From: Mytilus edulis
Taxonomy: Eukaryota
Reading direction: 5' to 3'
DNA: 64,000 nucleotides
Assembly (NCBI RefSeq): GCF_963676685.1
Contig: NC_092345.1
Span: 85,250,001 to 85,314,000 of the forward strand
Numbering within the stretch: the stretch's first letter is position 1; every line of letters begins with the position of its first letter. Below the pieces are notes generated by a model that was not told the origin of the DNA, ran no database searches, and worked only from the letters and a program-made list of their open reading frames with translations. The position numbers and the translations under genes were made by a program. Below, piece by piece: positions 10,030 through 63,352 of the stretch.

Positions 10030-11790
10030 TAAGAGTGAACTAGACATGGACTTATCCCTGTTATAGTATGAACTTGGTATGTGGATATCATATCCTCACT
10101 ATGTGAACTAGGTATGAATATTAAATATGCTAATAGTGTGAAATACATAGACATGTCTCATGCCTAAAGTGTGAACTAGACATGGATATGTTGTATGCTT
10201 AAAGTGTGAACTTTGTATATTGACACATAATAAAATTGAAGTGTGAACAAGGACTAAGGCATGGATTTATTATAGGCTGAATGTTAACTAGGTATGGACA
10301 TATCCTATGCTGATAGTGTGAACTAGACACATGTATGGACATGTCCTATGCTAAAAGTGTACAAGGCATGGATATGTCCTACGCTTATTGTGTGAACTTG
10401 GTTTTGACCCATGATAAGCTTGTAGTGTGAACTAGGTAAGAATTAATTATATGCTTTAAGTGTGAACAAGGTATGGACAAATCATATGCTTATAGTATGA
10501 ACTAATTAAGGACATATCATATGCTAATAGTGTGAATTAAGTATGGATATATCATATGGTTAAAGTTTGAACTAGGTATGGACATGCCATATACTTATAG
10601 TGTGAACTAGGTATAGACATATCAGATGCTTATAGTGTGAACTAATTAAGGACATATCATGTGCTTATAGTGTGAACTAAGTATCAATATACCATATGGT
10701 TAAAGTTTGAAATAGGTATGGACATGCAATATTCTTATAGTGTGAACTAGGTACGGACATGTCCTATGCTTATGTTGTGAACTTTGATTGACACATAATA
10801 AGCTTATAGTGTGAACTAGTTATGGACATATCATATGCTTAAAGTGTGAACTAGGTATGGACAAATCATATGCTTATGTTGTGAACTAGGTATGGACATG
10901 TCCTAGGCTTATGTTGTGAATTTCGTATTGACACATAATAAGCTTATAGTGTGAACTAGGTAGGGACATATCATATGCTTATAGAGTGAACTAATTAAGG
11001 GCATATCATGTGTTTATAGTGTGAACTAGGTATGTATATATCATATGGTTAAAGTTTGAACTAGGTATGGACATGCCATATACATATAGTGTGAACTAGG
11101 TATGGACATATAATTATGCTTATAGTATGAACTAGGTATGGACAAATCATTTGCTTATGTTGTGAACTAGGTATGAACATGTCCTATGCTTATGTTGTGA
11201 ACTTCGTATTGACACATAATAAGCTTATAGTGTGAACTAGGTATGGACATATCATATGCTTTTAGAGTGAACTAATTAGGTTCATTCCATGTGCTTATAG
11301 TGTGAACTTGGTATGGACATGTCCTGTGCTTATGTTGTGAACTTCGTATTGACACAAAATAAGCTTATAGTGTGAACTAGGTATGGACATATCATATGCT
11401 TATAGTGTGAACTAGGTATGGATATATCATATGGTTAAAGTTTGAACTAGGTATGGACATGCAATATACTTATAGTGTGATATAGGTATGGACATATAAT
11501 ATGCTTATAGTGTGAACTAGTTATGGATAAATCATATGCTTATGTTGTGAACTAGGTATGGACATGTAATATGCTTATAGTGTGAACTTGGTATGGACAA
11601 ATCATATGCTTATATGTTATGAACTAGGTATGTACATGTCCTATGCTTATGTTGTGAGCTTTGTTATTGACACATAATTTAAGCTTGTAGTGTGACCTAG
11701 ATATGAACATATCATCTGCTTATAGTATGAACTACCGGTAGGTATGGACATATCATATGCTTATAGCTTGAACAAGTTATGAACATTTTG
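10030..11790. repeat. 35-bp satellite array (about 50 copies)
   Basis: Consensus TAGTGTGAACTAGGTATGGACATATCATATGCTTA. Confidence 0.93.
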
Positions 11791-12245: not shown

Positions 12246-13097
12246 ATGGAGTCTGAAAAGGTTCCTCATCCACATCTTGTTCTAGACACAGGACAAGTTC
12301 AACAGAATGGTCATATAATACAGAAGTTGGAATCAAGATCTAGACTACTAAATGGAAATACTGACAGGAATGGAAATGACAATAATTCTCATATTGTTAA
12401 CTTGGAAGGTACTGTGTCACCAAACAGTCTTCGTCCAGACACACCCACATCGGCTACAAGGAAATCAGCATGGGAAAGAGCAAGAGACAAATATAAAGCT
12501 CAAGAATTAGAATGCAGCAAAAAGAAAACAAAAGTAAAACCTTTTGTTGATCCTGATGAGAAAGTAGAACAGAAGAAATTTCTAAACTTAAGTGGTGTTA
12601 AAGAAGTATTTTCATCAAGTCATTTCCAAAATAAGGATCTTGAACGATTATACCAGCGGTATTTCTTCAAACTTAATCAGTTGAACCTGTGTATTTCTTT
12701 GGGATTCATTTGTGTTATTAGTATAATACTGCTAGTGACTTACTATATTTATGGAGCTATTATGCCGGCAAGAGCCATCAATTTTGGCATTTTGTTTTTT
12801 TTGTGTATATTTTTAGAATTTTTATGTAATCGATCATCTTTTGACCAACAGCAAATGTTGATAACCTTGTTCATCATTATTTTGTTTTTTTGTGCATCAT
12901 GTGTTCTTGTTTCTCTGGACAACTCACCCAAATCAGGGTCTGATGGAGTTTGGATGAATGTTATATTTATATACATGATCTACACACTGCTACCTATTAG
13001 AATGAGATTTGCATGCCTGACTGGAATCACACTGTCCATTATTAGTGTATCGTGTACTGTCAGTTTTACAGCAGACAAAGGATACAGAGTAAAACAG
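12246..13097 (+). CDS. ADCY5: ADCY coding exon 1 (N-terminus and first TM cluster)
   Basis: MESEKVP...GYRVKQ; donor CAG|gtatat. Confidence 0.92.
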
Positions 13098-16000
13098 GTA
13101 TATAGTATAAACTTTTTGAATTTAGTTATACAATTTCGTCTTTTTTGAAGTTTCAACTAGAAAGAAGGCCTTTAGGTAAACTGGTTATGTAAACTTGTCT
13201 GTTTGACCTCTTTAATTAAAGGGGGTGCAGCACTAATGCATCTAAGAAAATGACATATTAATTATATTCTTCATGTGCCTTTTTTAAAGAATGATCTGGT
13301 ATTTCTGCATTTGTAGCCAGGGCAATTGAAGTACGTAGACTTATCTGTTGGGCAATAACCTTTATTTAAAAGCAAACATCTATTAAAATTTTATACATTA
13401 CACTTCCGACGGAAAATTTCTTGTTAAAAAGAGACACATTCCACTTCTTGCATATGTCATTCAAGAAAATGTATAAATTATTTAGATTTTTTTCACTTTG
13501 TTGAAAGGAATACATAATTCGTTATGATATATTTATACTGCTAAGACATTTCTGTTTAGATGTGTTTTCATATTATCACATTGATTACTGTAAATTCAGA
13601 AATTATTGCGATGTTTTTATTATTGCGATAAATGTGTCAGGGTTATAATCGCATTTATTAAAACTCGCATATTGAAATTTTTAATATGAATCAAACAGGA
13701 TTTTTCTGAATATCGCAAAAACTAAAATCGCATTTCAGTCTAAAATGACAAAATCGCAATAATAAATGCACGCAATAATTTCTGAATTTACAGTACATGT
13801 AGAGTCAAAGCAATGACCAGATAGAAATTTGTGGCTCTGTCACTGACTACACAATTAGCATCAACTTCCGTTTTCCACTAAATTCAATGAAAAAGAGCCA
13901 ATTTCCTTTGGTTTTTAGGACCAGAAACAGATAACATATACATTGACAAAAAAGATTTTGTAACTATGTTTTTATAACAAATACGGATAATATGTCTAAC
14001 TTAAATTGTTTAAGTTTTTTTTTTCCATATTTCATTAAATTTCATCCTTCACAAAGCTTAAAGACTGTAAATTGGAGTTTTATGTTTCAAAATGGTATGT
14101 TCATCAAAATTATGATACAAATGGCTTTAAAGTTGGCAAATTCCAGCGAAGTGTGAATATTTTCGTGTTGCCTTCTTGGATAAAAATTTTGTAGTTAAAA
14201 AAATAATTTAAAAAAAACATTTCCTAGAAAATGAGACCAGATAGAATTATAACTTCATAGCTTTTTTTTAAGAGTTCAGCATGATAGTGACATAGTTTTT
14301 TCTGTTTCATTCAAAGAGAACATTCTGACTAAAATATAAAAAAAAAAGGGAAAGAAAATACAAGTGGACCAAGTGTTTTGTCCAGTTTATTTTTTTCTTT
14401 TTTATTGCCAATTTTACTTTAATTGTTCTGCATGACAGAATTGATTTGATGGAGAGAAAATAAACATTGCATTTGATGAGATGTCAGAAATTTTCTGTTG
14501 AGATTAAAAAATGATAGTAAACCGTTTCATAACATGTAATGAGCACTATGTTTCTAATTGCAAAGGATGTTGTTATTTTGTTACTTGATGCAAACATTTT
14601 CTGTTGCAGGGGATTGCAAATGCATTGATATTTACAGCTACAAATTTGGTAGGGATATTTACACATTGGCCAACAGAGTACAATCAGAGACAAGCTTTCC
14701 TGGAAACAAGGCGATGTATAGAGGCTCGTCTGACAACACAGAGAGAAAATCAAGAACAAGTAATACACTTTTTTTTGTTTGGTTTCCCTTTTGCACTAAA
14801 ATATTTTATCAAGCGCAGCAATTTTATTTATTGTGGTTTTCAGTGTAATGTCTATTTTCATTGGTTGAAACCAGTCATTTATTTATGATAGAGGAGGAGA
14901 GTGATGGGGTGACCAAGAGCAATTTTGCCCACTTAATATATCAATTTATTTATATTGCATTGAAAATTACATTATTTCATCTCAGCTTCCTGCAAATTTT
15001 TAATCCCCCTAAGCCTTGCTGACTGTTTCCGTGATCATTCTGTATTTGTTATCAGCCTCATCCTCTTTATTAATTGAATCTTTCATTGTATGTTTGCATG
15101 TTTCTCTATCAAACTTGTGTGATCAAGTTAATTGTTTTTAAGTGGAAATTGTTTGTTGTACAGCAGATTTATTTAGGTTATAATGAATTCTAAAACTTGT
15201 GGTATAGATAATCTTTTTGTTATGACCCAGGTTACTCAGTGACATTTGAAATGTGATTTAATTTCTCGTCCAGATTTCATGTAAAAGAATCTACTAATGA
15301 AATTCTCAAAGAAAATCTCACTGTATAAAATGTTATGTCTCAAAAAGCCTAGAGCCTTTATGTCTAAATCATTGTATAACTGCAAGCAATTGAATACTAA
15401 AGGCGAAAATTTCCAATATCTCTACTTTTGTTCAGGGTATTGGTATATTTAATTTGATTTGGAGAAGTTAAAGTGAATTTCATGGGATACTGATTAGAAC
15501 TATTGTGCTAAGGACACTGAGGAATTGAAGTGAAGGATAAGACAAATTACATTTGTCATTGATGGAAAAGACATCTTAGCAAATTAATGCTGATTGCTTA
15601 CAATGTCTTGTGTTCTGTCAAAATAACAAACGAGCTACAAAAGATATTTCAATCCTTTGATAGGTGGATATCGGCAGATTAAATTAAACCAAAGAAATGG
15701 AACTCTTTATTATAGATTCTGAAATATTACCAAAATGTCAAGTTAAGATTGTATTGTAGACCCATTGTTGGCCTTTGGCTGTTATCTGCTCTTTGGTCAG
15801 GTTGTTGTCTCTTTGAAATATTCCCCATTTCCATTCTCAATTTTTTTAGATCTGTTTCTATAGTCATTAGTACTAAATTGGTGATTTTTCTATGTTAGAC
15901 AATACATATTATTGTGTGGATAGAGGTAATAGATACATTTGTTATTCATAAAGTTATCTTTCATCAATGGGGTCATGATACCTTACATGACTTATTTTTG

Positions 16001-41385: not shown

Positions 41386-44300
41386 AAGGTCTTTCCTTTT
41401 ACAAAAGGGAAAGACCTTACTGTATTTCTTCTGTTTATTATTATTAAGGTCTTTCCTTTTACAAAAGGGAAAGACCTTACTGTATTTCTTCTGTTTATTA
41501 TTATTCTTTTTCCGCCAAACTTTGACGAAGTTAGCAGCCTTAACCGTAAGACGTGTCGCTTTCATGTTCACACTTTGTATCGGTGTCATATATACCTATC
41601 TAGAACTCACCCTGTTAGTCGAAATATTTTGTCGGTTCGGAGTAATTCCTCCGAAACCAAAAAACCTTGTTATCGTTCCAACACCGTAACCGTAATAGGT
41701 AGAAAATAAACGAAGGGTGAAATTTGTTCAGGACCAGACCCCGGTTCTTCGTTACATTTGGATCGAAAAGATTCAACGACTCATTGGTAGGGTTATGCCC
41801 CTATGAAAATTAACCGGTGTCGGTGGACAACCAAAACTCAAAAACCGTAAGTCGTAGAGACCTAGGATCTTCACCATTCATCATCAATTCATGTGACTTT
41901 GAAAAATACCTCAAGGTCAAATGTGTATGTTGACCTTGACCTTTGACCTAACACCTTGTTATCAGAACAACTCAGAAACCATTATACTTACAGAAGTTTT
42001 AAATAGTGGAAAATGTTTGGGTCATTACGGGGCAACTTTGTTACATTTTGACCGAAGAGATTTGACCTTTTTGTAAGGGGCATAACCCCTGTTTTAGGTT
42101 TCTGAAAAGACAAAATCAGCATTTACTATATAACCAAAGGTCCTAGACCCATGGGGTCTTCAGCAATGACATTGGGGACCAATGACCTTGACAAAGGTCA
42201 AAAGGTCAAAGGTCAAGGTCATGTACCAGATAGCGAATTTAGTGATTTTAACCTTATTTAAGGGATTTTCAATGTGTTTTAAAGATTTTCAGTGTGTTTT
42301 AAAGCTGTTTAAGGTTGACCTTGACCTTTGACCTTAAAACTTTTAAGTCGATATCTCAAAAACGATTGTACTTACAGAAATAGTAAATAGTGAAAAACGC
42401 GTTGAGGTGGATGAGGCGCAACTTTTTGACATTTGACCGAAGAGATTTGACCTTTCTATAAGGGGCATAACCCTTGTTTTAGATTTCTGAAAAGGCAAAA
42501 TCAGCTTTTACTGTATAACCAAAGGTCCTAGACCCATGGGGTCTTCAGCAATGACATTGGGGACTAATGACCTTGACAAAGGTCAAAAGGTCAAAGGTCA
42601 AGGTCATGTCCCATATAGCAAATTATGTTTTTTTTACCTTATTTAAAAGATATTCAGTGTGTTTTAAAGCTTTTCAATACATTCTACGTCTATTGGAACA
42701 TGTATTTTACATTACAAAAGGAAAGACCTCTCAATTGTTCAAGAACAATTGACATTTTAATTATTATTATTATTATTAAGGTCTTTCCTTTTACTAAAGG
42801 GAAAGACCTTACTGTATTTCTTTTGTTTATTATTATTATTCTTCCGTTAAACTTTGACAAATTTAGCCGCGTTAACCGTAAGACGTGTCGCTTTCATATT
42901 CACACTTTGTATAGGTGTCATGAATACCTATCTGGAACTCACCCTGTGAGTCGAAATATTTTGTCGGTTCGGAGTAATCCCTCCGAAACCCAAAAACCTT
43001 GTTATCGTTCCAACACCATAACCGTAATAGGTAGAAAAAAAACAAAGGGTGAAATTTGTTCAGGACCAGACCTCGGTTCTTCGTTACATTTGGATCGAAA
43101 AGATTCAACGACTCATTGGTAGGGTTATGCCCCTATGAAAATTAACCGGTGTCGGTTGGCCACCAAAACTCAGAAACCGTAAGTCGTAGACACCTAGGAT
43201 CTTCACCATTCATCATCAATTCATGTATCTTTGAAAAATACCTCAAGGTCAAATTTGTATGTTGACCTTGACCTTTGACCTAACACCTTGTTATGGGATA
43301 ATCTCAGAAACCATTATACTTACAGAAGTTTTAAATAGTGGAAAATGTTTGGGTCATTACGGCACAACTTTGTTACATTTTGACCGAAGAGATTTGACCT
43401 TTTTTTAAGGGGCATAACACCTGTTTTAGGTTTCTGGAAAGACAAAATCATCTTTTACTATATAACCAAAGGTCCTAGACCCATGGGGTCTTCGGCAATG
43501 ACATTGGGGACTAATGACCTTGACAAAGGTCAAAAGGTCAAAGGTCAAGGTCATGTCCCATATAGCCAATTTGGTGTTTTTAACCTTATTTAAAGGTTTT
43601 TCAGTGTGTTTTAAAGCTTTTCAATACATTCTACGTCTATTTGAACATGTATTTTACATTACAAAAGGAAAGACCTCTCAATTGTTCAAGAACAATTGAC
43701 AGTTTAATTATTATTATTATTCTTTTTCCGCCAAACTTTGACAAATTTAGCCGCGTTAACCGTAAGACGTGTCGCTTTCATGTTCACACTTTGTATCGGT
43801 GTCATGAATACCTATCTGGAACTCACCCTGTTAGTCGAAATATTTTGTCGGTTCGGAGTTATCCCTCCGAAACCCAAAAACCTTGTTATCGTTCCAACAC
43901 CGTAACCGTAATAGGTAGAAAAAAAACAAAGGGTGAAATTTGTTCAGGACCAGACCCTGGTTCTTCGTTACATTTGGATCGAAAAGATTCAACGACTCAT
44001 TGGTAGGGTTATGCCCCTATGAAAATTAACCGGTGTCGGTTGGCCACCAAAACTCAGAAACCGTAAGTCGTAGACACCTAGGATCTTCACCATTCATCAT
44101 CAATTCATGTATCTTTGAAAAATACCTCAAGGTCAAATTTGTATGTTGACCTTGACCTTTGACCTAACACCTTGTTATGGGATAATCTCAGAAACCATTA
44201 TACTTACAGAAGTTTTAAATAATGGAAAATGTTTGGGTCATTATGGCGCAACTTTGTTACATTTTGACCGAAGAGATTTGACCTTTCTGTAAGGGGCATA

Positions 44301-52294: not shown

Positions 52295-52563
52295 ACTAGA
52301 AAGGAAATCTGAAATAATCATAGGTCTTTTCTATATGCTCCTTTGAATTTCAATCAAAGATGAAGAAGTGGATCTTTCTTTATTTTATTGGATACCTTAA
52401 CTACATAGGAATCTCTACAAATAATGTCATATAGCTTGGTTTTCCAAGTGCTACACGAAACATCTTTCTAAGCTATTAACACCAATATTATCAGCAATCA
52501 AAACCAGTCTTCAGACTTTGGGAAAATATCTACATTATGGGCGATGATAATCAGACGTAGATA
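52295..52563 (+). pseudogene. Decayed Penelope-like reverse transcriptase fragment, interrupted by the LTR element (continues at about 54935-54950)
   Basis: Translates to KDEEVDLSLFYWIP*LHR and ...SKCYTKHLSKLLTPILSAIKT, and to ILKN after the insertion. This resembles the Y-x-x-PKxHK region of Penelope-type RTs, with stops and frameshifts. Confidence 0.6.
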
Positions 52564-53241
52564 TGTCACCGGGGAAACTGGGTGACTTGTGAGGTTGTGT
52601 AACAAGAGCCTGACTGAATGGCCTCTTGTTACTGAAACTGTGTGATGCACCTGATCACACAACGAACGATTGCTGTGAATAGCAATGAGAACTCTGGAAC
52701 TGAAACTCTGGTGAAAACTAACTACTGAGACTCTGGAACTAGCGATGCATAAACCAATAATTCAGCATGGAATACTAATACTTTTATTACAGATGGACTG
52801 TGTTCAGTGTAAAGTCCTGAGTCCAAATCTTGCTTATTGAAATTATAAGCAAGTATTTATACACAATTGAAATGACAAGAATAGACATAACAAATAACAG
52901 TTAATTTGAGTGATATTGTTCACTGACAAAGATTAAACTATTTTTAGAACTTGAAGAATAGATATTAAATGATAATCTGATTATGACAATTAAGAACATA
53001 CATTATGAATAAGGTAAAATGTCACTAATTAGGTAACAGATTGAAACATGTCACTCAATGTCCAAACTAAGAATTAAAAAGCATGTTGATTTTAAGTCCT
53101 GGATACGAAATGTAAATAGAAACGAAATTATAAAATAAAATGAATTATAAAACAAAGAGAATTAAAGTCTGAAATATCAAAATTGAGAATTTTATATTAA
53201 AGTCCAAAATAATAAACGAAGCTGCTTTTTCCACTGTCACA
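52564..53241 (-). repeat. 3' LTR
   Basis: 678-bp direct repeat of 54257-54934. Confidence 0.92.
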
Positions 53242-53282
53242 TATGCCTCTCCTCCCAATTAAGTCCGTCCTCGGACTTAGCA

Positions 53283-54149
53283 CTATCTGAATCGGCCTCC
53301 TCTGCGGTTGTAATAGTGTCTGTTGTTGTTATTGGGACGCTGTTGGTTTTGACGGGATACAAGATGGAGTTCGTGGTTAAGGTCCTGAAGTTGAAAAGTC
53401 AATTGAGAAATCGAGTCCGCTTGAAAATTTACCTTTGAACATAGGTCTGCTTTTTCTTTTTCTAATGCTTGTTTTTCATTTTTCAATGATTGGATTTCAT
53501 CCGTAAATTCGGTAGAACGCATATAGTAAAGATCTTGCACCATTTTAACAGTCCCGTTTTTTTCGATTACTTGGTCCTTTAATTCTTGAATTTGATCCAC
53601 ATATTCCTGTACGTTTATGCGCGAAGCACTTTCTTCTTTCTGTTGACGCAGGTTTTCAAGTTCTTGCTTGAACTGGTCTCTTTCTGATTCGATGATTTGC
53701 TGATTCTTTAATTGAATTTTGAGTGCCTCGATACACTTTTGCTGTTCTAGATTTGTATTCTTTTCCTTTGCAATTTTCTGCTTCACACTTTTTAATTCTG
53801 TCTTGAGCACATTTGAAATATCCAAATATTGAATGAAAGGTGAATTCCGCATACCAGAGAATGGTAAAGCACGGATAATATTTTTACACTGAATATAGCT
53901 GTGTATTCTAGCTGTATCGCGCTCTTTTTGCTTTTTAGATTTCACACTAACTGATTTACTTTTGCTGTCCTTTGTAACTTTAGAAAAACACTTACTAGAA
54001 TAATGTCCGAATTTTCCGCACGAATAACATCTCTGATTGAAAGAGTTACAAATATAATGTTTGTGAAATTTGCCACACCTCCCACATGCTGGACTATAAC
54101 CTGACTGGATGTTCCATGGTCTCCATTGTGGTCGGAAGCTGTACTCCAT
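53283..54149 (-). CDS. 288-aa intronless protein: two CCHC zinc knuckles, long coiled coil, N/R-rich RGG tail (Gag-nucleocapsid-like)
   Basis: CGRCGKFHKHYIC and CYSCGKFGHYSSKC; E/K/Q-rich heptads at about aa 115-265; C-terminus NQQRPNNNNRHYYNRRGGRFR. Confidence 0.85.
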   Translation of the reverse strand: MEYSFRPQWRPWNIQSGYSPACGRCGKFHKHYICNSFNQRCYSCGKFGHYSSKCFSKVTKDSKSKSVSVKSKKQKERDTARIHSYIQCKNIIRALPFSGMRNSPFIQYLDISNVLKTELKSVKQKIAKEKNTNLEQQKCIEALKIQLKNQQIIESERDQFKQELENLRQQKEESASRINVQEYVDQIQELKDQVIEKNGTVKMVQDLYYMRSTEFTDEIQSLKNEKQALEKEKADLCSKVNFQADSISQLTFQLQDLNHELHLVSRQNQQRPNNNNRHYYNRRGGRFR

Positions 54150-54256
54150 CGTTGAATATTGTCTACGCTACTTGTCTGGGAACTCGCTTGGCTGCTTGAG
54201 GTCTCTGGATCGTGTGTTGAGCATAGAAGTCAGCACGCCGTCGTCGTCCACCAATC

Positions 54257-54934
54257 TGTCACCGGGGAAACTGGGTGACTTGTGGGGTCGTGCAACAAGA
54301 GCCTGACTGAATGGCCTCTTGTTACTGAAACTGTGTGATGCACCTGATCACACAACGAACGATTGCTGTGAATAGCAATGAGAACTCTGGAACTGAAACT
54401 CTGGTGAAAACTAACTACTGAGACTCTGGAACTAGCGATGCATAAACCAATAATTCAGCATGGAATACTAATACTTTTATTACAGATGGACTGTGTTCAG
54501 TGTAAAGTCCTGAGTCCAAATCTTGCTTATTGAAATTATAAGCAAGTATTTATACACAATTGAAATGACAAGAATAGACATAACAAATAACAGTTAATTT
54601 GAGTGATATTGTTCACTGACAAAGATTAAACTATTTTTAGAACTTGAAGAATAGATATTAAATGATAATCTGATTATGACAATTAAGAACATACATTATG
54701 AATAAGGTAAAATGTCACTAATTAGGTAACAGATTGAAACATGTCACTCAATGTCCAAACTAAGAATTAAAAAGCATGTTGATTTTAAGTCCTGGATACG
54801 AAATGTAAATAGAAACGAAATTATAAAATAAAATGAATTATAAAACAAAGAGAATTAAAGTCTGAAATATCAAAATTGAGAATTTTATATTAAAGTCCAA
54901 AATAATAAACGAAGCTGCTTTTTCCACTGTCACA
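54257..54934 (-). repeat. 5' LTR
   Basis: 678 bp; I see only 3 substitutions relative to the other copy. Confidence 0.92.
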
Positions 54935-54991
54935 GATACTTAAAAATCAAATATATGGTAGAGTACATACAATCTAGTCTCTTGCATTAGT

Positions 54992-58200: not shown

Positions 58201-59110
58201 AAAACTTTGACTTCATCATACTTGAAGAAAGCTTACTAAATATTAGAACTGATATATATTAGCCGAACAATCAGACGGAAGAGAACTGTTCAAATTGGCA
58301 TAATAAACAGGGAATTCAAGCGAAACCCAAAGGTTAAGAAACAGAATGGGAAAAGGCTTTTTACAGCTTGAGAGAAATTGTTAAGATTATCGTTACTGAA
58401 AACCTTTAACGAATGCTGCCCTCAGATTTTCCTTACTATTCCAAATATAGAATCAAGATGCAAGAGGGCTTGAATCAATTCAACCAAGACAGGTATTGGC
58501 AGCTATAAAAAAATCTCTGCTTCGGATTTGTTCGAAACGGAATCAAATGATATCACGAAGAATGTTTACAATAATAAATTCAAGTATTCCATGCCGAAAA
58601 TCTAATGAGCCGGGCTTGAAAAAAGTTTGATGAAAATCAAAATCAAGCAGAACCAGACACTTGTGAAGCTCTTGAAGTGCAAGGTATAGAAGGTGAGAAA
58701 ATTGAATCTTCAGGAGATAAGTTATATCTTATATATATTATCCTTTCTTAAAAAAAACTTTGAATGATCCCCCAACTTTGATTTTATAATATTTTTTTTA
58801 TTGAATCCCCTTTTCCTTTCTTACGAAAAAAAAACTTGACCCCTTACATTTTGACCAGCCTGGTAAAAAATATATATAAAAGTCAGATATAAAAGTCAAA
58901 TATATGAATATTTAAAGTGGTTGCGAAATGTCCTTTACGGTTTATTATCGGTCTGAAATGCTCTTTTGGTAAACAGATGAACCATTCTAATTATAAAATT
59001 ATGACTGCTATCTAGTGGTATGTTTGACTGGGTTCGCATAAAATTCAGCTTTTAAAGTATATCGTTCGGGTACCAGACTGGATGAATAAGTCGGATCTGT
59101 CTTTCCTGTT

Positions 59111-59122
59111 GAAAGTGAAAGT
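59111..59122 (+). promoter_or_regulatory. IRF-E/ISRE-like element GAAAGTGAAAGT
   Basis: Matches the IRF consensus GAAANNGAAA(S/G)Y, about 50-60 bp upstream of the CARD ATG. Confidence 0.55.
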
Positions 59123-59171
59123 AAAGAAAGGATTTTATCCTGCCATAAATAAACATAGTGTGAGAAGTACA

Positions 59172-59630
59172 ATGAGTTCCGATGATATCAAAATGATTTT
59201 GAGAAAGTTTTACGTTGTATTACGAACGAATGTTGATCCCCGTGCAGTCACGCCAATAATTGAAGGCCTCACAGTTTTTGATAAGCAACAAATACAGGCA
59301 ACAACTAACATGGATGGTGCTATGCTTGGGAACGACAAACTGCTAGACACACTTGGACGTCGCACGACAAGAACATTTTTGTCATTTGTGACAGTTTTAA
59401 AAGAGTATAATCAAGAAATAGCATATGATATGATGCAATACGCACAAGATCATTTCCCAAATATACACACTAGCATTCGGAATTTTGAGCGACATCATAA
59501 TCAAATACCATCAGCAACTGTTAAGCCTTCAGTTGCTTCAGGTTCAGATGCTCAGAATTATCCACTTAGTGAGAGCCATAGTATTCACCAAAGAACAACA
59601 TTTAGCCAGCGTCCTGATGCAGGGTCACAG
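59172..59630 (+). CDS. CARD/death-fold domain protein, coding exon 1 (gene continues beyond the window)
   Basis: ILRKFYVVLRTNVDPRAV...GLTVFDKQQIQA...NDKLLDTLGRRTTRTFLSFVTVLKEYNQEIA follows the six-helix CARD pattern. It is followed by an S/Q-rich linker and a CAG|gtagtt donor (phase 0). Confidence 0.68.
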
Positions 59631-59790
59631 GTAGTTATATTTTGTTTTAGGATTGTGTCATTTATGTTATATAATTTTCAAATTTGTATTCCTTTCCTAT
59701 CTTAAAAATCTTCAATGGGTTACTTTGTTTATGTTATGATTCAAAAAAATAATGTATGCAGGCCAAATAAGGTAAATATTCTGGTGTTAC

Positions 59791-60711: not shown

Positions 60712-63352
60712 AATATGCAGGTGTTATAAGGATTGGTCAGTGTTGTATTTCTAAGGTTCATATGCAGGTGTTATAATGATTGGTCAGTGTTGTATTTCTA
60801 AGGTTAATATGCAGGTGTTATAATGATTGGTCAGTGTTGTATTTCTAAGGTTAATATGCAAGTGTTATATGTGGTTGGTCAGTGTTGTAATACTAAGGTA
60901 AATATATACAGGTGTTAATTATTGGTCAGTTGTAATTCTAAGGTTGATATGCAAGTGTTAATGATTGCTCAGTGTTGAAATTCTAAGTTTAATATTCAGG
61001 TGTTACATGTGGTTGGTCAGTGTTGTAATACTAAGGTAAATATGCAGGTGTTAATGATTGGTCAGTGTCGTAATTCTAAGGTTGATATGCAAGTGTTAAT
61101 GATTGCTCAGTATTGAAATTCAGGTCAGGTGAAATTCTAAGTTTAATATTCAGGTGTTATATGTGGTTGGTCAGTGTTGTAATACTAAGGTAAATATATA
61201 CAGGTGTTAATTATTGGTCAGTTGTAATTCTAAGGTTGATATGCAGGTGTTAATGATTGCTCAGTGTTGAAATTCTAAGTTTAATATTCAGGTGTTATAT
61301 GTGGTTGGTCAGTATTGTTATACTAAGGTAAATATATACAGGTGTTAATTATTGGTCAGTGTCGTAATTCTAAGGTTGATATGCAAGTGTTAATGATTGC
61401 TCAGTGTTGAAATTCTAAGTTTAATATTCAGGTGTTACATGTGGTTGGTCAGTGTTGTAATACTAAGGTAAATATGCAGGTGTTAATGATTGGTCAGTGT
61501 CATAATTCTAAGGTTGATATGCAAGTGTTAATGATTGCTCAGTGTTGAAATTCTAAGTTTAATATTCAGGTGTTACATGTGGTTGGTCAGTGTTGTAATA
61601 CTAAGGTAAATATGCAGGTGTTAATGATTGGTCAGTGTCGTAATTCTAAGGTTGATATGCAAGTGTTAATGATTGCTCAGTATTGAAATTCTAAGTTTAA
61701 TATTCAGGTGTTATATGTGGTTGGTCAGTGTTGTAATACTAAGGTAAATATGCAGGTGTTAATTATTGGTCAGTGTCGTAATTCTGAGGTTAATATGCAG
61801 GTGTTAATGATTGCTCAGTATTGAAATTCTAAGTTTAATATTCAGGTGTTATATGTGGTTGGTCAGTGTTGTAATACTAAGGTAAATATATACAGGTGTT
61901 AATTATTGGTCAGTTGTAATTCTAAGGTTGATATGCAAGTGTTAATGATTGCTCAGTGTTGAAATTCTAAGTTTAATATTCAGGTGTTACATGTGGTTGG
62001 TCAGTGTTGTAATACTAAGGTAAATATGCAGCTGTTAATAATTGGTCAGTGTTGTAATTCTAAGGTTGATATGCAAGTGTTAATGATTGCTCAGTGTTGA
62101 AATTCTAAGTTTAATATTCAGGTGTTATATGTGGTTGGTCAGTGTTGTAATTCTAAGGTAAATATATACAGGTGTTAATTATTGGTCAGTTGTAATTCTA
62201 AGGTTGATATGCAGGTGTTAATGATTGGTCAGTGTTGTAATACTAAGGTAAATATACAGGTGTTAATGATTGGTCAGTGTTGTAATACTAAGGTAAATAT
62301 GCAGGTGTTTATGATTGGTCAGTGTCGTAATTCTGAGGTTAATATGCAGCTGTTAATGATTGGTCAGTGTTGAAATTCTAAGTTTAATATTCAGGTGTTA
62401 TATGTGGTTGGTCAGTATTGTAATACTAAGGTAAATATGCAGGTGTTAATGATTGGTCAGTGTCGTAATTCTGAGGTTAATATGCAGCTGTTAATGATTG
62501 GTCAGTGTTGTAATACTAAGGTAAATATGCAGGTGTTAATGATTGGTCAGTGTGGTAATTCTAAGGTTAATATACAGGTGTTAATGATTGGTCAGTGTAG
62601 TAATTCTAAGGTTTATATGCAGGTGTTAATGATTGGTCAGTGTCGTAATTCTGAGGTTAATATGCAGCTGTTAATGATTGGTCAGTGTTGTTATACTAAG
62701 GTAAATATGCAGGTGTTAATGTTGGTCAGTGTGGTAATTCTAAGGTTAATATACAGGTGTTAATGATTGGTCAGTGTAGTAATTCTAAGGTTTATATGCA
62801 GGTGTTAATGATTGGTCAGTGTCGTAATTCTGAGGTTAATATGCAGCTGTTAATGATTGGTCAGTGTGGTAATTCTAAGGTAAATGTGCAGGTGTTAATG
62901 ATTGGTCAGTGTTGTAATTCTAAGGTATATATACAGGTGTTAATTATTGGTCAGTTGTAATTCTAAGGTTGATATGCAGGTGTTAATGATTGGTCAGTGT
63001 GGTAATTCTAAGGTTAATATGCAGGTGTTAATGATTGGTCAGTGTAGTAATTCTAAGGTTAATATGCAGGTGTTAATTATTGGTCAGTTGTAATTCTAAG
63101 GTAAATATACAGGTTTCAATGATTGGTCAGTGTTGTAATACTATGGTAAATATGCAGGTGTTAATGATTGGTCAGTGTTGTAATTCAGAGGTTAATATGC
63201 AGCTGTTAATGATTGGTCAGTGCTGTAATTCTAAGGTTAATATACAGGTGTTAATGATTGGTCAGTGTTGTAATTCTAAGGTTAATATGCAGGTGTTAAT
63301 GATTGGTCAGTGTGGTAATTCTAAGGTTATATACAGGTGTTAATGATTGTGT
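60711..63352. repeat. 45-bp satellite (45/47-bp variants, about 58 copies) in the CARD gene intron
   Basis: Consensus AATATGCAGGTGTTAATGATTGGTCAGTGTTGTAATTCTAAGGTT. Confidence 0.95.

Follow-up and report, generated by a model that had tools for sequence, protein, structure and literature searches.

We analyzed a stretch of 64,000 nucleotides from the mussel Mytilus edulis (RefSeq assembly GCF_963676685.1, contig NC_092345.1, positions 85,250,001 to 85,314,000 of the forward strand), hereafter called the window, with all positions counted from its first letter. Between positions 52564 and 54934 the window holds an element of 2371 bp with a direct pair of 678-bp long terminal repeats (LTRs) at its two ends. 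Alignment of one LTR with the other gave identity at 675 of 678 positions, and direct reading of the sequence showed TG..CA ends and a GATA target site duplication (TSD), a 4-bp agreement that has a probability of about 1/256 by chance, or somewhat higher in AT-rich DNA. The element is oriented on the minus strand, which carries its single open reading frame (ORF) and is the only strand that the other signals fit. A run of 11 purines placed 4 nt before the 3' LTR would, judged by its position, be the plus-strand primer site (polypurine tract, PPT), and an 18-mer that starts with TGG, 3 nt past the 5' LTR, stands at the site expected for a primer binding site (PBS). In the 1015-bp interior, the ATG follows the LTR after 107 nt, the ORF takes up 867 nt including its stop codon, and a last segment of 41 nt, which contains the PPT, leads up to the other LTR; 867 of the 1015 internal bases (85%) are thus ORF. 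We found no pol remnant and no second ORF in the element, and the interior leaves no room for a protease, a reverse transcriptase (RT), an RNase H or an integrase. A preliminary description, made from the letters of this DNA, had drawn the same outline of near-identical LTRs, TG..CA ends, GATA TSD, PBS, PPT and one intact ORF without a remnant of these enzymes, and it was borne out on all of these counts, the PBS being a PBS-like 18-mer. The element is a structurally complete LTR retrotransposon without pol.

With borders set from the TATAAATA and AATAAA motifs only, each LTR would be divided into a U3 of about 410 nt, an R of about 60 to 70 nt and a U5 of about 200 nt, and the transcript of the element would measure roughly 1.75 kb. 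The insertion is very recent. The two LTRs differ at three positions, all of them transitions (52592, 52596 and 52600 versus 54285, 54289 and 54293), which corresponds to 3/678 differences (K = 0.0044) and to an insertion 0.2 to 2 million years old, assuming 1e-8 to 1e-9 changes per site per year. The three transitions fall within 9 bp of U5, beside a predicted leader hairpin and about 30 to 40 nt from the PBS-like site. They look like one event (an RT error, editing or a short conversion tract) and not like three independent mutations; since they are packed in 9 bp, they possibly count as one event, and the element is possibly younger still.

The sole ORF encodes a protein of 288 amino acids. 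At 32% GC, about 1.5e-5 open frames of 288 codons are expected by chance in the whole window, and dozens of homologues exist, so this is not a chance ORF. The protein begins with a nucleocapsid (NC)-like module, in which an FRPQW motif is followed by two CCHC knuckles with the spacings C-x2-C-x3-H-x4-C (residues 22 to 34) and C-x2-C-x4-H-x4-C (residues 41 to 54). After a basic helix and an LPF motif comes a coiled coil, with strong heptad periodicity over residues 110 to 250, and the protein ends in a disordered tail of 32% R, 26% N and 11% G, whose RG-type motif abuts the stop codon. The spacing and the N-terminal place of the double knuckle had been read in the same way in the preliminary description, and the coiled coil and N/R/RGG tail that it proposed are upheld by predicted helices, by the heptads and by the composition of the tail. 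The coordinates of all parts are collected in Table 1.

Table 1. Parts of the retrotransposon and of its encoded protein, by position in the window.
Feature	Position	Strand	Basis
TSD, left copy, GATA	52560-52563	none	direct sequence reading; same as 54935-54938
3' LTR (element orientation), 678 bp, TG..CA	52564-53241	minus	LTR alignment
AATAAA in 3' LTR	52783-52788	minus	from 5' LTR motif positions, 1693-bp offset
TATAAATA in 3' LTR	52854-52861	minus	from 5' LTR motif positions, 1693-bp offset
Interior, 1015 bp	53242-54256	minus	between the LTRs
PPT, 11 purines, 4 nt before 3' LTR	53246-53256	minus	sequence reading
Sole ORF, 288 aa and stop	53283-54149	minus	ORF list; homologues with 27-96% identity; family alignment
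Disordered Asn/Arg/Gly tail, residues 270-288	53286-53342	minus	composition; family C-terminal motif
Coiled coil, residues 111-269 (helices 111-177 and 180-269)	53343-53819	minus	AlphaFold2, heptads, profile matches
Basic helix (KS-KK-RD-R), then LPF motif, residues 70-103	53841-53942	minus	conservation, AlphaFold2
NC-like module, residues 5-59 (FRPQW motif and two CCHC knuckles)	53973-54137	minus	Pfam, PDB profile, hhalign, BLASTP
PBS-like 18-mer, starts TGG, 3 nt past 5' LTR	54236-54253	minus	sequence reading
5' LTR, 678 bp, TG..CA	54257-54934	minus	LTR alignment, minus-strand reading
AATAAA in 5' LTR	54476-54481	minus	sequence reading; about 70 nt past TATAAATA
TATAAATA in 5' LTR	54547-54554	minus	sequence reading
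TSD, right copy, GATA	54935-54938	none	direct sequence reading

The knuckle module was then compared with conventional Gag proteins. In hhalign, residues 7 to 59 alone aligned to positions 303 to 355 of a 390-aa Gag, with a probability of 97.8% and an E-value of 8.9e-13, and in BLASTP residues 5 to 56 and 12 to 58 matched Gag NC regions at 37 to 40% identity (E-values of 2e-11 and 3e-11). The family profile, run against the sequences of the Protein Data Bank (PDB), matched NCp11 of equine infectious anemia virus (EIAV) at 6.9e-7 and also EIAV Gag and the NC of human immunodeficiency virus (HIV). The NC match takes in the residues ahead of the first knuckle, and it extends to the spacings, unusual (x3) in the first knuckle and canonical (x4) in the second; the N-terminal fifth is therefore a genuine Gag nucleocapsid module. 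Several weak HMMER matches have their knuckle pair near the C-terminus, and one protein with the same type of knuckle pair, P0140, runs into an aspartyl protease (Pfam gag-asp_proteas). The nearest conventional Gags found are those of unclassified mosquito elements; P0147 is a member of one such mosquito Gag family, which occurs on contigs about 5 kb long. The preliminary description had likened the double knuckle to Gag of the Mag clade of Ty3/Gypsy elements, a possible affinity for which this element has no pol that could be placed in a tree. Two very long proteins, P0034 (2741 aa) and P0035 (1434 aa), have 26 to 40 tandem CCHC knuckles and were matched through the knuckle only. The mussel protein as a whole is not colinear with gag: the capsid that precedes NC there is absent, and the basic helix, the LPF motif, the coiled coil and the RG tail are without a Gag counterpart. 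The outcome that the preliminary description had named as telling against itself, a colinear gag alignment or a capsid fold, was therefore not seen; only the knuckle module aligned, and it stands at the opposite end of the protein.

The search for a capsid fold, which had been proposed along with that description, was made on a model from AlphaFold2 with the family alignment (mean predicted local distance difference test [pLDDT] score of 81, predicted template modeling [pTM] score of 0.30). It shows a pair of small knuckles (residues 20 to 57), a helix at 72 to 94 (pLDDT of about 93), a loop with the LPF motif, disordered ends and two long helices, 111 to 177 (67 residues) and 180 to 269 (90 residues), with pLDDT values of 89 to 97. 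Foldseek comparison of this model with PDB and BFVD returned zinc-knuckle proteins only, none of them at E<=1e-3, and no capsid. As a control we used the conventional Gag P0147 (390 aa), which HMMER had matched through its knuckles and whose model was poorer (pLDDT of 57); for this Gag, the top Foldseek matches were all capsids, with high probabilities but weak E-values: murine leukemia virus (0.97), the C-terminal domains of the capsids of Rous sarcoma virus (0.99) and PEG10 (0.98), and also PNMA2, Copia and dArc1. Since the same procedure recovers capsids for the control Gag, a failure of the method does not account for the lack of a capsid in the mussel protein. Pfam gave zf-CCHC alone, in 23 of 30 family members, with Retrotrans_gag reaching just an E-value of 0.7, and the other matches of the profile in PDB were generic coiled coils (SMC, tropomyosin, dynactin, keratin and tetherin). 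An RNA recognition motif (RRM) or C-terminal domain (CTD) of the ORF1p type gave no match in Pfam or in the PDB profile search.

Relatives of the protein were abundant in bivalves. A word-indexed search returned 32 Mytilus proteins with 36 to 97% identity to the ORF, the best matches being gene models of Mytilus galloprovincialis, M. edulis and M. coruscus, and a family-profile search of the word-indexed proteins returned only the same Mytilus proteins again. With HMMER, 122 matches at E<=1e-3 were obtained over 1.84 billion representatives, 57 of them at E<=1e-10. The full-length relatives are stand-alone proteins of about 250 to 330 aa with 27 to 47% identity. All named members are pteriomorph (M. 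galloprovincialis, M. coruscus, M. edulis, Pinctada imbricata and Tegillarca granosa), the remaining ones coming from ENA and Logan contigs without an organism name; profile scans of metagenome, viral and prokaryote-genome contig collections found no family relative. We did not count the short contigs (1.0 to 2.1 kb) of many ENA and Logan relatives as support for short elements or transcripts, since contigs there are short generally. Clustering at 90% identity grouped, within species and in each subfamily, several equal-length copies on different chromosomes (4 to 5 per species), such as seven copies in M. coruscus and, in Pinctada, five of 300 aa and another five of 333 aa. A quick tree was star-like with long branches and had Mytilus in at least five separate deep lineages, with most deep forks unsupported.

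The family shares one layout, in which the start motif M-[ED]-[YF]-x-[FL]-R-P-Q-W is followed by knuckles at about residues 22 and 41, the basic KS-KK-RD-R segment, LPF at about residue 95, variable helices and a C-terminal RG(R)G-R-F, an end that throughout the family immediately precedes the stop codon. R81, P96 and F97 were invariant in 30 of 30 aligned sequences. Mean pairwise identity among distant members varied by region: it was 0.43 to 0.44 for the N-terminal motif, for the knuckles and for the basic/LPF segment, 0.17 to 0.21 for the helices and 0.09 for the short linker. Since both ends, the metal ligands and the linear motif are kept at 30% overall identity across three bivalve orders, the protein appears to have been under purifying selection along the lineages leading to the present copies. 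The ORF is no one-off; it belongs to an old multicopy family in which conservation extends over the full length of the protein, a pattern that speaks for selection on it. Eight M. edulis models (P0008, P0010, P0011, P0016, P0018, P0020, P0022 and P0023) start at an internal methionine, Met100, and are without knuckles; they may be an annotation artifact or a knuckle-less subfamily. One knuckle-less M. edulis model bears the RefSeq name "probable DNA double-strand break repair Rad50 ATPase," a misnaming through its coiled coil.

We also looked for a link between this family and pol. Among the 122 HMMER matches, none of those aligning beyond the knuckles was longer than about 390 aa, and the longer relatives had no protease, RT, integrase or capsid domain. 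In about 10 chimeric gene models the ORF is fused with a host domain (tetraspanin, STAND NTPase, ankyrin, MFS, COR or EGF), and in none of them with a pol domain. Fused models of Mytilus, namely, P0007, P0021, P0027, P0030, P0175, P0178 and P0179, are probably insertions in or beside host genes that were merged by annotation. Another model, P0026, combines a fragment resembling an endonuclease of long interspersed nuclear element (LINE) type with a family copy; it was considered as a LINE, for which the order is wrong, and is read as a chimeric gene model. This pol-free evidence, all of it indirect, argues against a one-off deletion.

The surroundings of the element have a GC content of about 31 to 33% across the window. 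A 300-aa ORF on the plus strand (12246 to 13148) has a Pfam AC_N match (1.8e-39), which represents the membrane-spanning N-terminal part of adenylyl cyclase, and is probably an exon of a host gene. On the strand opposite to the element and 4 kb from it, a 207-aa ORF (59082 to 59705, plus strand) has a CARD_2 caspase-recruitment domain (2.8e-9). Tandem arrays occupy 60712 to 63349, 10102 to 11786, 1704 to 2151 and 41929 to 42676; in this order, they are a 45/90/138-bp satellite that spans 2.6 kb and causes a strong positive GC skew at the end of the window, a 35-bp satellite that spans 1.7 kb, eight 56-bp units that are 99% identical and a 385-bp unit repeated 1.9 times. Neither the LTR nor the interior nor the protein family was found a second time within the window, Rfam families were absent from it, and blastn against a phage collection gave no match.

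The closest known relatives in architecture are the TR-GAG elements of plants, nonautonomous LTR elements that keep gag alone (Chaparro et al. 2015, PMC4350172). Like them, the mussel element is below 4 kb and has LTRs, a PBS-like site, a PPT, a TSD and a single gag-related ORF without pol. TR-GAG families are multicopy, with signs of recent activity and a helper that is often not found (PMC4350172), and near-identical copies of the mussel family protein lie on different chromosomes or contigs. The proteins differ. Those of TR-GAG are full Gags, with a UBN2 or Retrotrans_gag capsid part and then a zinc finger, whereas in the mussel protein the NC module alone is Gag-like, it is N-terminal, and a long coiled coil takes the place of the capsid. 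TR-GAG also shows no conservation between plant species, while the mussel family spans three bivalve orders, and the host and TSD are different (a plant and 5 bp against an animal and 4 bp) (PMC4350172). The earlier interpretation stands for the pol-less element, the Gag-type knuckles, the lack of a capsid, the coiled coil with its RG tail and the family; it does not stand as a new category, since TR-GAG (PMC4350172) is already known in plants. Its proposals that the protein might get the RNA into helper particles, or interfere with the helper or with silencing, are conjectural.

On balance, we consider it probable that the element is a nonautonomous, TR-GAG-like LTR retrotransposon whose own protein forms a ribonucleoprotein (RNP) with the element's own RNA and whose Pol is borrowed from a helper. 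That the copy was made by reverse transcription of the tRNA-primed type and inserted by an integrase is indicated by LTR identity, by where the PBS-like site and the PPT lie, by the TG..CA ends and by the 4-bp TSD; since the element encodes none of those enzymes, it was, under the established scheme of LTR element replication, mobilized in trans. Judged from its sequence, it appears to keep what is needed in cis (an LTR promoter and a polyadenylation signal, the PBS, the PPT and integrase-type ends) and exactly one gene. The product of this gene appears to be Gag-derived but capsid-less, with four predicted parts, namely, the NC module, the basic helix with LPF, a two-helix coiled coil of about 160 aa and the Arg/Gly tail. 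The protein is presumably needed for mobilization, because the ORF would otherwise have decayed as in terminal-repeat retrotransposons in miniature (TRIM) and large retrotransposon derivatives (LARD).

In the mechanism that we propose, the transcript of about 1.75 kb would double as mRNA and genome. The protein would bind its own transcript, probably in cis during synthesis, through the knuckles and the RG tail; the coiled coil would multimerize it into an RNP, and it may act as a nucleic acid chaperone for primer annealing and strand transfers. The protease, RT, RNase H and integrase would be supplied in trans by an autonomous LTR element of the same cell, and the conserved basic/LPF segment is a candidate docking site for the helper or for a host factor. 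We infer RNA binding, oligomerization, the cis preference, the supply of Pol in trans and the LTR setting of the distant family members.

Several observations weigh against this proposal. Its weak point is the recruitment of Pol, in which a capsid-less protein has to bring a foreign Gag-Pol to the RNA. In the 64-kb window we found no helper, no element with the same LTR ends or PBS, and no tRNA gene to match to the PBS-like 18-mer. The fold of the leader was not more stable than that of shuffled sequence (z = -0.96), and therefore no packaging structure is claimed. At a pTM of 0.30, the packing of the predicted helices is not established. Finally, many LTR elements have gag and pol as separate ORFs, and for this reason the stand-alone homologues are no proof that the whole family is without pol.

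That last point leads to a different explanation of the element as a deletion derivative. The protein would then be the normal Gag of an autonomous bivalve LTR clade with pol, conserved since the autonomous masters need it, and pol would have been lost in this copy, and perhaps in many others, by internal deletion or recombination. Stand-alone models of 250 to 330 aa fit such a clade, gag and pol often being separate ORFs, and plant TR-GAG families are thought to arise in this way (PMC4350172). We nevertheless regard this origin as unlikely. Between the stop codon and the LTR are 41 nt, which hold the PPT and no pol fragment, and the RG motif is kept up to the stop codon across the family. None of the 122 representatives is fused to a protease or RT, whereas conventional Gags in the same search run into protease, and the roughly 10 chimeric models join host genes, never pol domains. 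Reading the protein instead as a Gag-derived interference factor, which persists by inhibiting a competing or helper retroelement or as a host restriction factor and not by promoting transposition of its own element, draws on the homology of its NC module to conventional Gag: the module could compete for the same RNA signals, binding helper RNA or Gag and trapping it in coiled-coil assemblies. The predicted oligomerizing coiled coil would suit such a dominant-negative action, and the many M. edulis models without knuckles hint at functional diversification. Still, the copies are numerous, near-identical and spread over several chromosomes, like those of an active transposon and unlike a fixed host gene, the present copy sits in a complete and young LTR element, and a protein that did nothing but inhibit the helper would limit its own spread; we hold this function to be improbable.

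A cellular origin was weighed as well. A bivalve-specific host gene for a CCHC/coiled-coil protein could have been taken up once by an LTR element, in which case the homologues would be ordinary paralogues. Lineage-specific expanded gene families are numerous in bivalve genomes, gene capture by LTR elements is reportedly known in plants, and databases label the homologues just "CCHC-type domain-containing protein" or "hypothetical." Against capture, the ORF fills the interior exactly from the PBS-like site to the PPT, and the knuckle module matches retroelement NC including the residues before the knuckles. Copies of equal length and at least 90% identity are found on 4 to 5 chromosomes per species, and insertions into unrelated host genes give chimeric models. 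A captured host gene therefore seems highly improbable to us.

Partial Gag proteins that are expressed on their own and act on other retroelements, such as Ty1 p22 and mouse Fv1, are capsid-derived and work via capsid contacts; the mussel protein differs in having no capsid part and in being borne by a mobile multicopy element. Conventional Gags (the mosquito P0147 family and the NC of EIAV and HIV) resemble it in the double CCHC knuckle, whose spacing is identical, in the same short linker and in the kind of motif that flanks the pair. In those Gags, however, capsid is followed by NC, while in the mussel protein NC comes first, a capsid fold is absent and nothing downstream runs into protease. 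LINE-1 ORF1p (PMC5940361) is similar as a small protein with a multimerizing coiled coil and a basic nucleic-acid-binding part but no capsid fold, and in both proteins the coiled coil evolves fast and the binding module is conserved; ORF1p thus offers a working analogy for RNP formation. It differs in having an RRM and a CTD, with the coiled coil before the binding domain, and in being encoded upstream of an ORF for endonuclease and RT, whereas CCHC knuckles come first in the mussel protein. Moreover, LINE-1 is a non-LTR element that uses target-primed reverse transcription, in contrast to the mussel element, which has LTRs together with a PBS-like site, a PPT and a TSD of integrase type, and there is no sequence homology. 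Membership in LINE ORF1 was rejected on the lack of an RRM/CTD match and on the LTR context, so that a functional analogy alone remains.

TRIM and LARD elements, among them biv-TRIM (PMC6934838), are also nonautonomous, depend on Pol in trans and occur in Mytilus and other bivalves with an unknown autonomous partner. Their interiors are noncoding, and TRIM elements are below 1 kb, whereas 85% of the mussel interior is an intact conserved ORF; biv-TRIM is, in addition, without a canonical PBS (PMC6934838). The intact and conserved 288-aa ORF rules out an identity with TRIM or LARD. Troyka LTR retrotransposons have CG..CG termini, a 3-bp TSD and a C-x2-C-x8-10-H-x4-C finger (PMC12440569) and were likewise rejected, the mussel element having TG..CA ends, a 4-bp TSD and finger spacings of x3 and x4.

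In the full-text literature searched, an incomplete collection that did not include Repbase, Gag-only LTR elements were reported from plants only and the bivalve family was not reported. The Gag-only nonautonomous LTR type would thereby extend to animals, with the mussel element as the first animal case in the literature searched. Should all members of the family be carried by LTR elements, they would bear on the question of what such an element has to encode in order to be copied by a foreign polymerase, and on whether a cis-made protein that binds RNA and oligomerizes decides the competition for reverse transcription, which would be the logic of LINE ORF1p reached from a different ancestor. 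A broader reading, which we put forward as possible though doubtful, is that of a long-lived pteriomorph "satellite" LTR lineage that dropped the capsid and evolved an ORF1p-like coiled-coil RNP protein from an NC module, and that has persisted for hundreds of millions of years, in several sublineages per genome, on Pol from any autonomous elements. Were this true, it would mean a convergence of LTR and non-LTR strategies and LTR-type replication without a capsid protein of the element's own. For the annotation of bivalve genomes, dozens of mussel, pearl-oyster and ark-clam models now called "CCHC-type domain-containing protein," "hypothetical" or "Rad50-like" are probably transposon genes, and several chimeric host gene models are probably insertion artifacts.

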